Sequence record: NC_005872.1
DNA length: 28,337 nt
Strand: one strand, 5' to 3'
The notes under the pieces are model-generated. The model made no database searches. It worked only from the letters and a program-made list of their open reading frames with translations, and had not been told where the DNA came from. Made by a program: the position numbers and the translations under genes. Of this stretch, positions 861 to 21,143 are shown piece by piece (the stretch's first letter is position 1; each line of letters opens with the position of its first letter).

Positions 861-886
861 TAGTACTCCCCCTACCTTCCTCCCCC

Positions 887-893
887 TTTTTTT
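887..893 (+). terminator. Oligo-T archaeal terminator
   Basis: T7 run after a pyrimidine tract, about 27 nt downstream of the stop at 860. Confidence 0.5.
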
Positions 894-903
894 GACGGCG
901 TGA

Positions 904-1051
904 TTAGTTTCAATCGAAAGAGTTGAAAGTCGGGTTAGATTCGGTTGGTTCACGATATTGGACGGAGTCACTTTCAGTCTACTTTATCTTTACACGGTTG
1001 TTAGTTTCAACTTACCTCAAAGCTTTCAACTCTTTCGGGGCGCTTTCAACT
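904..1051. repeat. (G/C)TTTCAA(C/T) repeat cluster with a 15-bp inverted repeat
   Basis: Copies at 907, 1004, 1023 and 1043. CGAAAGAGTTGAAAG (915-929) is the exact reverse complement of 1023-1037. TTAGTTTCAA occurs at 904 and 1001. Confidence 0.8.
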
Positions 1052-1149
1052 GTCTTGGGTTTTCGCCGAGTTTTCACGGCGGAAAATTTCCATCAGAAAA
1101 ATAGATACTATACATATACAAGATATAACGGCGCGCCGTTGACTCTTAC

Positions 1150-1230
1150 CCTTACACATCACAACACTATCCATACATTTCCATACAGCTAGTCTTATGT
1201 TTCCATACGCGTTCCCATACATTTCCTTAC
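1150..1230 (+). repeat. Helically phased CC(A/T)TAC repeats (iteron-like)
   Basis: CCATAC at 1171, 1181, 1203 and 1215; CCTTAC at 1150 and 1225; CCATACATTTCC duplicated at 1171 and 1215. Confidence 0.75.
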
Positions 1231-1267
1231 ACTACTTCTTTTGTAAAGCGTAGAACTCCCATCATTT

Positions 1268-1359
1268 CCCCTACCTCCCCGTGGCCGGGCTTACCCCAGC
1301 CGGAGGAGGTAGGGGCTAACCACGCCCTTGGGAGGCCGCGGCCTCCCTCCCGACAAGGG
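1268..1359. repeat. GC-rich inverted repeats and palindrome
   Basis: CCCCTACCTCC (1268-1278) pairs with GGAGGTAGGGG (1305-1315). Perfect 18-bp palindrome GGGAGGCCGCGGCCTCCC at 1330-1347, flanked by CCCTTG/CAAGGG. Confidence 0.8.
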
Positions 1360-1443
1360 AGACCACGACCAACCCAAGGACCATGGTTAGCATCTAAGTA
1401 TAGAGATATTGCTGGTTAATAAACCTTCTCACGGCGTGTAACC

Positions 1444-3189
1444 GTGGTAATGTTTAATAACCGCTCTTTTTATCTACAAGATATGAGAAGACAGGCCGGC
1501 GGAGACGACGTTTTCACTCACCAATCAGCTGACTGCCGTATCGATTTTCAGAACGGATTATTAATCTGTATCGGTATAGATGGCGATACCGTCACCAAGC
1601 GTATCACGTTGGCTAGGACCACCAAGAAGAAAGATGAAATTTCTATATTTGAGGCGCTTAGGTTGGCTGGTCTGGCGACCACGGGTGTGCACCCAGCTAC
1701 ATTGTCCTTCACGCCTTTCAAGGACCCAGAAAGCAATGAGGTAGGGATGGTATACGTGCCGGCGGTTATTCCTACCTCTCAGAAGATGGGTTTTCTCTAT
1801 GATGACGGTGGTAAGTTTGGCTTCTCTACCTTTGTGGCGGGTGGCACTAAGGTCTTTGCTGTGGATTACAATTCTAATGTAGTTATAGACGTATTGGGTC
1901 AAGAAATCCCCTCAAAGGAGGAGTTTGAGAAGGCTCTTAACAAGTTCAATAAGGAGCTTGACTTCTTGGGCACGTATAGGGAGTCCGTGCTCTTTGTCAC
2001 CCTCTACCCTTACCTATACGTCCACTTTCTGAGGCGGCCTATAATCACCATTACTGGCCCTTTCCGCTCTGGTAAGACTACCGTGCTGGAGCTTGTCCAA
2101 TCCATCATAGGCGTGCCGACTATGGTGCGTGGCAACTTCTCTCTGGCTGGCGCTAGGGGTTTGTTGGCATATAGGCATGTGATTCTTGATGACTTTGGTG
2201 AGGGTGCCGTGCTGGAGGACCCAAACATAAGCATGTTGTTACAGTATCATGACCGTGGGCTTGTGGCTAAGGTTGATGATAGGCTTAAGACCAAGGTATT
2301 CCCTCTTAGGGGCGTCCTCTACCTAACTGGCGGCTATGCGATTAACCTACTGAGGCTGTCAAGCTATGTGGATAGGCTGTTTCTACTTAAGATGGCTCTC
2401 TCTCGCAATATGCTTAACACCATGAACGCGGTTTTCAACTCTATCATCAAGGATGCGGATTACTACCGTTGGGCCTTCTCACGGCTATACCTCTATTTCC
2501 ATGAATATTACCTATCACTAGCCACAATGCTTCACATGCCGTGGAGGCGTGATAGCATTTTTGTAACGGATGCGATTAACTATCTCATTATGCGCACTCT
2601 AGACAGTAGTAAGGAGCCCACTCTAGTGGTAGAGAACAAGGCGGAAAATGCCAAGAAGCACGCGGCCGATGTCCATATGGCGCTTATACTTCAGATTCTT
2701 AAGGCCCTTCTCAGGAGGCGCGCTCTGGGGTTTGAAAAGGCTAAGAATAAGATGTTTAAGGTCAAGGGCCAAGATGTGGAATTTTACCATGTGCAATACG
2801 TCCAAAGGCTGGAGATTCCCTCTCAAATTGGACACGGCACGGAGAGCGTGAGCGAAACGGTATCTATAGGCGCCACAAAAACCATATCCAAAACCATTAG
2901 TATGAGTAAAGTCAAGCAATATGCCTCTCCCTCAATGGTCCAAGCGGTTATAGACATGTACACCTATCTGAGTGACTATTTGTTAGTGGCTAGCCACGAC
3001 GGAAAGAACTACAGTGTCTGGGTGAGGGCTGACGCGGTTGATGATGCCATTAAGTGGCTCATTTTCACACTCCAGGAGCATGCGCCACACTACTTGGACA
3101 ATTTCCCCACGATAGTTGATGATGTTGTGCGGAAAGCTTATGAGGAGGTTATGCGGAGGCTTGAGGGCGATAAATTTAAAAATAAGTGA
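1444..3189 (+). CDS. AAA+ P-loop ATPase, probable SF3/MCM-like replicative helicase (581 aa)
   Basis: Walker A GPFRSGKT, Walker B HVILDDF, sensor-1-like LYLTG, Arg-finger-like VDRLF. TTAATAAA lies 28 nt upstream of the GTG start. ATPase is secure; helicase versus packaging ATPase is inference. Confidence 0.8.
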   Translation: MVMFNNRSFYLQDMRRQAGGDDVFTHQSADCRIDFQNGLLICIGIDGDTVTKRITLARTTKKKDEISIFEALRLAGLATTGVHPATLSFTPFKDPESNEVGMVYVPAVIPTSQKMGFLYDDGGKFGFSTFVAGGTKVFAVDYNSNVVIDVLGQEIPSKEEFEKALNKFNKELDFLGTYRESVLFVTLYPYLYVHFLRRPIITITGPFRSGKTTVLELVQSIIGVPTMVRGNFSLAGARGLLAYRHVILDDFGEGAVLEDPNISMLLQYHDRGLVAKVDDRLKTKVFPLRGVLYLTGGYAINLLRLSSYVDRLFLLKMALSRNMLNTMNAVFNSIIKDADYYRWAFSRLYLYFHEYYLSLATMLHMPWRRDSIFVTDAINYLIMRTLDSSKEPTLVVENKAENAKKHAADVHMALILQILKALLRRRALGFEKAKNKMFKVKGQDVEFYHVQYVQRLEIPSQIGHGTESVSETVSIGATKTISKTISMSKVKQYASPSMVQAVIDMYTYLSDYLLVASHDGKNYSVWVRADAVDDAIKWLIFTLQEHAPHYLDNFPTIVDDVVRKAYEEVMRRLEGDKFKNK

Positions 3190-3205
3190 TTTTTTCTAAA
3201 TTGAT

Positions 3206-3309
3206 GCGCGGCCCCCTTAGGGGCCGCGCGTTTCCCCCCCGAGTTGGGAGTGAACCGCCTCACGAGTTGCCGGGCACGCCCCGGGTGCCGTGGGGGGCGG
3301 CACCCGGGG
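3206..3309. repeat. Two GC-rich stem-loops downstream of the ATPase gene
   Basis: GCGCGGCCCC-CTTA-GGGGCCGCGC (3206-3229, 10-bp stem) and CCCCGGGTGCCG-TGGGGGG-CGGCACCCGGGG (3279-3309, 12-bp stem). Confidence 0.8.
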
Positions 3310-3394
3310 TCTTAGTTTCACCCCTCCCAATTGTCTTAACCATATCCCTATAAAAGCATAACGAAACTTATAAGTCGGGTAGGTCTGGCTGTAT

Positions 3395-21052: not shown

Positions 21053-21143
21053 GCTTTTAAATCGGCGCGCCTTTTTTGTTTCAACTCTCCCCCTTTCTTT
21101 ACGTGAGGCGTAAAATTTAAAAATCCGCATTTCATAAGGATAC
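21053..21143 (+). promoter_or_regulatory. Full promoter cassette: box A (-91), box B (-66), TTTACG-N5-CGTAAA (-46), TATA (-28)
   Basis: GCTTTTAAAT at 21053, GTTTCAAC at 21078, palindrome 21098-21114, TTTAAAAA, GGATAC-ATG. Confidence 0.9.

Follow-up and report, generated by a model that had tools for sequence, protein, structure and literature searches.

A conserved control region beside the ORF582 gene of Pyrobaculum spherical virus, a candidate site for starting or controlling DNA copying in globuloviruses

Iteron origins, such as those of R6K, pSC101 and P1 and the geminivirus common region, join helix-phased short repeats to an AT-rich neighbour, a conserved hairpin and divergent promoters. 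A block that resembles them in layout lies near the left end of the Pyrobaculum spherical virus (PSV) genome, between the genes ORF247 (120–860) and ORF582 (annotated at 1444–3189). PSV is the type member of the Globuloviridae; the window analysed here is its whole genome, 28,337 bp long, and is 100% identical to AJ635161. For the Globuloviridae, the mode of replication is not known and no replication proteins are identifiable (ICTV profile, PMC12662056). The region between the two genes, 861–1482, is undescribed in the literature searched, which did not include the 2004 PSV genome paper. We find that it is, to near-certainty, a selected cis-acting element, and we put it forward as the best candidate so far for where globuloviruses start or control DNA copying.

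The likeness to iteron origins includes behaviour among relatives: as geminivirus iterons switch with their Rep, the PSV iteron set switches between close relatives. Unlike those origins, however, PSV has units of only 8–10 nt and a palindrome placed between the iterons and the AT-rich patch; neither a Rep-type initiator nor a protein covarying with the iteron class was found, and the genome is linear and hairpin-ended, with a hyperthermophilic archaeal host. Transcription-primed origins (ColE1 RNA II, the T4 oriF/oriG R-loops, the T7 primary origin and the mitochondrial light-strand promoter with its conserved sequence blocks, LSP/CSB) would resemble the PSV region in other respects, namely a predicted promoter aimed at the origin-type elements, a predicted structured, G-rich RNA over a C-rich template, and an AT-rich element downstream. 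Such origins do without a dedicated initiator, as we propose for PSV; iterons, however, are not typical of them.

The control regions of polyomaviruses and papillomaviruses are likewise compact non-coding blocks by an ATPase gene, in which repeats of origin type stand together with palindromes, an AT tract and promoters for both directions, but their ATPases are proven superfamily 3 (SF3) helicases that bind the repeats, whereas ORF582 could be assigned to no helicase family, and there is no sequence relationship. Archaeal chromosomal origins share with PSV the repeats and the AT-rich element beside a gene for an AAA+-like ATPase, and GGAAA, present in the minus-strand iteron, is also found in the cores of their origin recognition boxes (ORBs). 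Compared with the ORB consensus, the PSV repeats, (T)CCnnAC(A), share a single orientation and keep to one side of the AT-rich patch, with no dyad and no G-string; unlike in an ORB-type origin, no orc1/cdc6 gene is adjacent, the matches of ORF582 being sub-threshold and to the P-loop only. The type II centromere parC–ParR and pNOB8 AspA also set ~11-bp-phased repeats near a promoter and beside a small DNA-binding-type neighbour. In PSV, however, no actin-like or ParA-type motor was found.

Conservation of the region and its iteron array

Relatives were gathered by a metagenome scan and protein-cluster look-ups, giving about 20 metagenomic PSV-like loci (designated by L and a number; ORF582 identity 67–91%) and a deeper lineage, L032, with 38% identity in the ATPase. 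No PSV relatives were found in IMG/VR by a protein scan and a DNA-pattern scan (seven pattern matches were spurious), and a DNA similarity search against other phage and virus records returned PSV itself only. No gene is annotated within 861–1443. The ATG at 1483 is the sole ORF582 start codon common to all relatives; the annotated GTG at 1444 is not shared and, on this comparison, is probably wrong. Thus, the true non-coding stretch is 861–1482 (~620 nt). The gap between the ORF247 and ORF582 homologues measures 581–840 nt at every locus that includes the stretch, the other intergenic gaps of PSV being mostly below 120 nt.

The region can be aligned at the DNA level and is kept in 19 of the 19 PSV-like relatives that include it, as well as in L032. 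Its computed conservation exceeds that of the 4-fold degenerate sites of ORF582 in each pair of values (0.82 vs 0.68, ~0.72 vs 0.55 and 0.64 vs 0.49), and its indels against the relatives are mostly of 1 nt, not multiples of three. Therefore, the region is both selected and non-coding, and its standing as a cis-acting element is, as said, nearly certain. A coding gene in the gap was considered and ruled out, given the 1-nt indels, the lack of an open frame common to the relatives and an unconserved micro-ORF (see below). No tRNA was found in the region and no Rfam 15 family matched at its gathering score; the best E-value was 0.026, and the best match was mir-3122 on the minus strand, which reached 26 bits against a gathering score of 92 and shares only a long hairpin shape. 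The initial annotation, made from the letters of the window, was accordingly right to see no convincing gene here.

That annotation had listed seven features: TTTCAAC repeats, inverted repeats of 15 and 11 nt, an AT-rich stretch, palindromes of 14 and 18 bp, and CC(A/T)TAC repeats. All are present, with the TTTCAAC positions off by one (1005, 1024 and 1044 being correct), and as a set they are not random, as judged from 1000 dinucleotide shuffles of the region and, for CCWTAC, 300 shuffles of the whole genome. No palindrome in the genome exceeds that of 18 bp (P(≥18) = 0.001 in the region shuffles), and two palindromes of at least 12 bp occurred in 0 of the 1000 region shuffles; the 15-nt inverted repeat is the genome's longest with a loop of at most 150 nt (shuffle maximum 13). 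Six copies of CCWTAC lie inside 81 nt, against a maximum of three in the whole-genome shuffles, and the four copies of TTTCAAC, counted on both strands, compare with a mean of 0.14 in the region shuffles.

The CC(A/T)TAC repeats are true iterons, phased beyond chance. In all relatives they occupy six or seven orthologous slots, about 93, 82, 72, 62, 40, 28 and 18 nt before an invariant GTAAAGCG box, at spacings near multiples of 10.8 nt (10–12, 19–23, 34, 44 and 54). This best period of 10.8 nt has a mean vector strength of 0.89, where the null does not go above 0.66; the genomes in this comparison are related and are not independent counts. Such helical phasing argues for recognition on DNA. 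The box is identical in L032 and occurs as an inverted pair in PSV2 (L002).

The central dinucleotide of the iterons is uniform inside a genome and differs between sister genomes, the within-genome identity being 0.68 against 0.31 after shuffling (shuffle maximum 0.47). Class AT comprises PSV and L006; class CA comprises L005, L007, L009, L019, L024, L028 and L029; class TA comprises L010, L021 and L023; and L008 and L011 are mixed. Five CCTATA(A/T) units, 10–11 nt apart, stand in the same place in L032, and four 22-nt repeats lie directly upstream of the ATPase gene of PSV2. This concerted switching points to a specific binder or, alternatively, to rapid homogenisation of the copies. To judge from its layout, the array is most likely the assembly site of a sequence-specific DNA-binding protein.

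Between the iterons and the AT-rich stretch stands the palindrome at 1127–1140, which reads ACGGCG-T-CGCCGT or CGGCG-A-CGCCG in relatives and, in L011, the fully compensated GTGACCC..GGGTCAC. The AT-rich stretch itself (1085–1128) may serve in unwinding, may contribute to the U-rich end of a leftward RNA, or may do both.

A predicted leftward promoter and two minus-strand hairpins

Read on the minus strand, GGTTAATAAACC (1414–1425) becomes a purine-rich stretch followed by TTTATTAA, 22 nt and an ATG (A1393). This predicted promoter, P1, has the 8 + 22-nt geometry of the ORF582 promoter and of PSV's other leaderless promoters, and its arrangement is kept in all PSV-like relatives. The initial annotation had proposed that conservation of the layout be checked in TTSV1 and TSPV1, and in both we found the order TATA, roughly 21–22 nt, ATG and hairpin; L032 is arranged likewise. 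Minus-strand transcription would most likely start at about A1393, and hairpin B begins ~2 nt past this predicted point. P1 stands back-to-back with the ORF582 promoter and points away from the ATPase gene, whose ATG at 1483 lies 30 nt from the first base of the TATA at 1453–1460, as expected of a leaderless mRNA. The plus strand is C-rich here (skew −0.186). Because the micro-ORF opened by the minus-strand ATG is short (5–25 codons) and unconserved, in a by-eye translation of the hairpin B sequences, the leftward transcript is read as non-coding. That a structured RNA is made leftward from the region seems to us fairly probable. The initial annotation had named an abundant transcript explaining the repeats as grounds for giving up its proposal; for the right half of the region, such a transcript is a live possibility.

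In many relatives (L006, L009–L011, L019–L021, L023–L025 and L028–L031), an extra 130–225 nt lie between P1 and the ATPase start and carry a second module of transcription start site and TATA (TTTCACTCAyAyATCAGC ... GGGTTTATAAAC). The extra stretch is absent from PSV, L005, L007, L008 and L027.

Two perfect repeats in the right half, an 11-nt inverted repeat (1268–1278/1305–1315) and the 18-bp palindrome (1330–1347), had been taken for separate cruciforms, but they turn out to be pieces of two minus-strand hairpins, A and B. Over 1249–1400 the fold of the minus strand (−102.9 kcal/mol, z = −8.6) is much more stable than that of the plus strand (−74.2 kcal/mol), and no 90-nt window in the genome is more stable than those of the minus strand at 1231–1321 (z = −6.6). 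Both hairpins recur in relatives, in most of which the minus-strand helix is unbroken at sites that are A·C mismatches on the plus strand. Of the 16 pairs in the outer stem of hairpin B, 7 show double compensatory changes; the covariation score of this stem was reached by 0 of 500 shuffles, and slid controls collapse. The arms of hairpin A are low-complexity runs of C and G. The non-Watson–Crick cells comprise 26 G·U on the minus strand vs 6 on the plus strand; L032 displays the bias independently (G·U 7 vs 1; −65.1 vs −46.7 kcal/mol), and TSPV1 has the same bias in weaker form. Only PSV has the 18-bp palindrome in perfect form, L005 already showing it interrupted; the conserved part is the long hairpin. 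Thus, the minus-strand folding, the covariation and the strand-specific G·U pairs argue for an RNA or, less well, for a hairpin of single-stranded minus-strand DNA.

Left part of the region, flanking genes and further elements

Table 1. Sequence features in and next to the region 861–1482 of the PSV genome
Feature	Position	Strand	Basis or conservation
C-rich tract CTCCCCCTACCTTCCTCCCCC, then T7	866–893	+	Kept in all relatives
GATTAGTTTCAATCGAAAGAGTTGAAAG, with TTTCAA/TTGAAA inverted pair; left arm of the 15-nt inverted repeat	902–929	+	Clade-restricted
Conserved block CTTTATCTTnACAC..TTGTTAGTTTC	984–1010	+	TTGTTAGTTTC core 998–1008 nearly invariant (alignments)
Three TTTCAAC(T)nT(C/T) boxes (1005, 1024, 1044), 19–20 nt apart	1005–1054	+	Sequence
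AT-rich stretch, 79.5% A+T, conserved core ACTATACATATACAAGAT	1085–1128	.	Composition and alignment
Perfect 14-bp palindrome AACGGCGCGCCGTT	1127–1140	.	Conserved as hairpin, not as sequence
Iteron array, six (T)CC(A/T)TAC(A) (1150, 1171, 1181, 1203, 1215, 1225)	1146–1235	+	Sequence
Near-invariant box TTTTGTAAAGCG	1239–1250	+	Best-conserved motif of the region; 13/14 non-redundant relatives
Hairpin A (contains the 11-nt inverted repeat)	1269–1314	-	GC-rich hairpin here in every relative
Hairpin B, 77 nt, roughly 34 bp; the 18-bp palindrome is its 3' arm	1315–1391	-	Folding, covariation
Predicted promoter P1: GAGAAGG (1430–1424), TATA TTTATTAA (1423–1416), 22 nt, ATG (1393–1391)	1391–1430	-	Geometry, conservation
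ORF582 core promoter: TATA TTTAATAA (1453–1460), T5 (1467–1471), leaderless ATG 1483	1453–1485	+	Shared start

At the left edge of the region (Table 1), the C-rich tract with its T-run, a pattern also found 3' of other PSV genes, is the probable terminator of ORF247. The C-rich motif CCCCTACCT(T/C)CC occurs both at 866–880, after the ORF247 stop, and at 1268–1279, as the 5' arm of hairpin A, bracketing the module. Further on, GATTAGTTTCAATCGAAAGAGTTGAAAG is kept in the clade that runs from PSV to L009/L029, and the other clade has CTGTAAAGAATGC instead. The stretch 902–929 is loosely like the Pyrobaculum family I CRISPR repeat, GAATCTCAAAAAGAGGATTGAAAG (PMC3396285), whose end is ATTGAAAG; the PSV version, CAATCGAAAGAGTTGAAAG, has AATC, AAAGAG and TTGAAAG in common with it. 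The likeness is not significant, and mimicry of a CRISPR repeat was ruled out: PSV's version is 5 nt shorter, TTGAAAG is lost in half of the relatives, and Rfam CRISPR-DR gives E > 6.

The TTTCAAC repeats had been read by the initial annotation as origin iterons. Besides the tabulated boxes, PSV has an inverted copy at 922–928, and only the copy at 1044 is common to all clades. Elsewhere in the genome, three promoter cassettes (at 21079, 23912 and 26003) carry the 11-mer TTTCAACTnTC 65 nt ahead of the ATG, and three further cassettes have variants of it. Since the same box recurs in six other PSV promoters, TTTCAAC is not origin-specific, and we now regard it as a promoter-associated box. The perfect 15-nt inverted repeat (915–929/1023–1037) is confined to one clade, its right arm missing in half of the relatives. 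It was rejected as a structure, for it shows no compensatory changes, and is better described as two inverted copies of the TTTCAACTCTT box.

The six cassettes are paralogous, ~95–115 nt long and located in the right third of the genome (21032–21146, 23200–23328, 23863–23979, 24490–24598, 25975–26070 and 26840–26952). They precede ORF167, ORF179, ORF171, ORF102, ORF183 and ORF126, and weaker versions precede ORF131 and ORF198. Their elements run in the order TTTTAAAT, GC palindrome, T-run, TTTCAAyTnTC, CTTTACG..CGTAAA, TTTAAAAA and ATG. The palindrome CGGCGCGCC, which is similar to the one at 1127–1140 and is followed by T6, is found at the ends of the genes upstream of these cassettes.

Regarding the flanking genes, ORF582 is an orphan-family P-loop ATPase with a standard Walker A motif, GPFRSGKT. 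Searches of Pfam, PDB profiles, NCBIfam and PHROGs gave P-loop (Walker-motif) matches or nothing, and its AlphaFold model, a poor one with a predicted local distance difference test (pLDDT) score of 52.8, had no Foldseek match at E ≤ 0.001. A hidden Markov model (HMM) search found only 20 relatives among 1.84 billion proteins; gene callers give the relatives of ORF582 565–570 aa, and the distant ones have sub-threshold P-loop matches to AAA_16, AAA_22 and ORC-CDC6-like. A helicase was rejected as unsupported, the matches by sequence and fold searches being to the P-loop only, and the initial description of this neighbour as a helicase or initiator gene is not borne out, with no significant match to a family of either kind. 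The protein has been postulated to be the packaging ATPase (PMC4124505), and its PSV2 homologue is called ClpB-like in the literature.

ORF247 is modelled in three parts, of which the C-terminal domain is confident and the other two are a coiled coil and a proline-rich linker without order. Fold matches of this domain are weak, every one at E > 0.1; nearly all are winged-helix DNA binders, among them the pNOB8 centromere-binding protein AspA. As modelled, the C-terminal domain looks like a winged helix; it is almost identical between genomes of different iteron class. No Rep-like protein was found. The start of ORF247 is probably the ATG at 165 (MPHVNIIDARP) rather than position 120; in every relative the protein opens with M-x(1-3)-NIIDARP. 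Just downstream, the winged-helix proteins ORF165a/b carry the Pfam domain 'PSV_trans_reg_dom'.

Some further observations were made in passing. In PSV2, positions 268–440 hold GTAAAGCG and CGCTTTAC as an inverted pair, together with a TTTCAACTATC box and four direct repeats of 22 nt that all contain T5; the annotated gp01 (276–491) overlaps these non-coding-type elements and may not be a real gene. In PSV, the gap 3190–3394, the second-largest on the left, has T6 and then G+C-rich hairpins, for example a perfect stem, GCGCGGCCCC/GGGGCCGCGC, at ~3207–3230, and its minus strand is the genome's next most structured stretch after 1231–1391. The deposited PSV sequence has N bases at five sites (8461, 14333, 16483, 25628 and 26899).

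Possible roles of the region

We propose, tentatively and as a call that falls slightly on the doubtful side, that PSV-like globuloviruses have in 861–1482 their principal cis-acting control region, for transcription as well as for replication or maintenance, and that its iterons and AT-rich patch form a replication or maintenance assembly site that is read into by RNA. The region would then possibly be a transcription-activated origin. On the conservation and selection, the phasing and concerted switching of the iterons, the covariation and strand asymmetry of the hairpins and the promoter geometry, all computed in this analysis, we infer leftward firing of P1, the extent of its RNA, an iteron-binding protein and a replication start in the region, put together as follows. 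In the right half (1268–1430), P1 would start a leftward RNA at ~A1393, which would at once fold into two long G+C-rich hairpins, B then A. In the left half (~1044–1250), the six or seven iterons would lie on one face of the DNA helix, flanked by TTTTGTAAAGCG on one side and by the hairpin-forming palindrome and the A+T-rich patch on the other, and a protein array would assemble on them beside this patch, where the DNA melts easily. The RNA from P1, itself G-rich on a template rich in C, would meet the array and help to open or prime the DNA. Such a mechanism would let a virus without recognisable replication genes borrow host enzymes, and the same protein array could also throttle both divergent promoters.

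Several points weigh against this proposal. No initiator or helicase gene was found near the region by the Pfam, PDB, NCBIfam, PHROGs, fold and HMM searches of ORF582, no ORB-like dyad was seen in the region, and, within the left 7 kb, no residue of ORF247, ORF582, ORF314, ORF165a/b, ORF172, ORF88a or ORF137 tracks the iteron class. The leftward orientation of P1 is argued from sequence logic; a position-weight-matrix scan favours the minus strand only slightly (4.3 vs 3.0), the matrix being crude, dominated by the paralogous cassettes and weak at separating the two orientations. The wobble asymmetry could be inflated by strand-biased mutation and also fits a hairpin of single-stranded minus-strand DNA. 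TTTCAAC and the CGGCGCGCC palindrome are present in ordinary promoter cassettes, so that some of what looks origin-like belongs to the general grammar of PSV transcription. Cumulative GC skew, suggested by the initial annotation as a check, does have its minimum at ~1.0–1.5 kb, but the C-rich repeats and a layout with nearly all genes on one strand explain this minimum, so that the skew is unusable as an origin marker and uninformative on the question. Moreover, PSV has 190-bp inverted terminal repeats, and its ends are probably covalently closed (PMC12662056); such ends make initiation at the termini, as in rudiviruses and poxviruses, a real alternative. Of the origin-like layout as first described, then, what survives is a selected module with phased iterons by an AT-rich patch, and what falls away are the TTTCAAC iterons, the cruciforms and the helicase neighbour.

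Other roles have to be weighed against the same evidence. It is possible, though unlikely, that the region is purely a transcriptional switch, in which the iterons, TTTCAAC and GTAAAGCG would be operator or activator sites (for ORF247 or ORF165a/b) that balance the ATPase promoter against P1, the hairpin RNA would be regulatory or antisense, and replication would proceed from the hairpin termini. This would suit the TTTCAACTnTC box and CGGCGCGCC palindrome held in common with six ordinary cassettes, the two back-to-back promoters of canonical geometry, the 'PSV_trans_reg_dom' proteins just downstream and the termini reported to be covalently closed (PMC12662056), and immunity regions, too, typically switch their binding sites in concert. 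However, 580–840 nt is very large for a switch where other gaps are mostly below 120 nt, the iterons lie 170–250 nt from either promoter, and six or seven phased direct repeats by an AT-rich patch are more typical of an origin or a centromere than of operators. A centromere-like partition site, with the iterons bound by, for example, ORF247 so as to segregate the chronically carried genome and ORF582 perhaps serving as motor, we consider improbable. Par sites are known to switch iteron specificity, and the placing of ~11-bp-phased repeats with a DNA-binding-type gene on one side and an NTPase gene on the other recalls parC/ParR. The AspA match of ORF247, weak as it is, points the same way, as does the non-lytic, chronic infection without integration (PMC12662056). 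Yet ORF582 has a standard Walker A without the ParA-type deviant motif and is neither actin- nor tubulin-like, the winged helix of ORF247 is near-identical across iteron classes, and all fold matches of ORF247 have E > 0.1.

Phased repeats could also seed a helical protein array, and a unique conserved element near one genome end would be well placed as a packaging or nucleation signal, either starting the coating by core protein into helical nucleoprotein or marking the genome for ORF582 as the postulated packaging ATPase (PMC4124505). We hold this to be quite improbable: the packaging label of ORF582 is only a postulate, an enveloped helical nucleoprotein requires no translocating motor, and the family-wide unit of promoter and hairpin RNA would be left unexplained. 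Highly improbable, in our view, is a single-strand initiation signal, whereby strand-displacement replication would free the minus strand, on which the hairpins would form and attract priming, much as at the single-strand origins of plasmids that replicate by rolling circle. Strand-displacement replication is used by the linear archaeal viruses AFV1 and SIRV2, and the strand-specific tolerance of G·T/G·U fits a structure needed on one DNA strand. As DNA, however, hairpin B of PSV would have 6–8 G·T mismatches, poor at 85–100 °C but fine in RNA, and in four lineages a canonical promoter precedes the start of the hairpin by exactly 30 nt, which argues for transcription.

The proposed assembly site read into by RNA could be carried further, to a hitherto unseen device common to the globuloviruses. 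A leaderless-type promoter by the ATPase gene would fire toward the left end, and its non-coding, G·U-rich hairpin RNA would run into the iterons and the AT-rich patch and prime or license host-driven replication of the hairpin-ended genome, iteron switching (AT, CA, TA, TATA) setting incompatibility or exclusion groups. We regard this extension as speculative and distinctly unlikely as it stands.

What the region offers are the first concrete candidates for replication in the Globuloviridae, namely the iteron array, the predicted start at A1393, a structured RNA of at least 125 nt and a winged-helix-type neighbour. The set-wise flips of the iteron core between sister genomes also let specificity, incompatibility or superinfection exclusion in archaeal viruses be studied as a natural experiment. 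Should an RNA running into the iterons indeed drive replication, host enzymes would be put to use by a linear archaeal virus with hairpin ends along a new route; should it not, the region would still be the family's first conserved non-coding RNA candidate.

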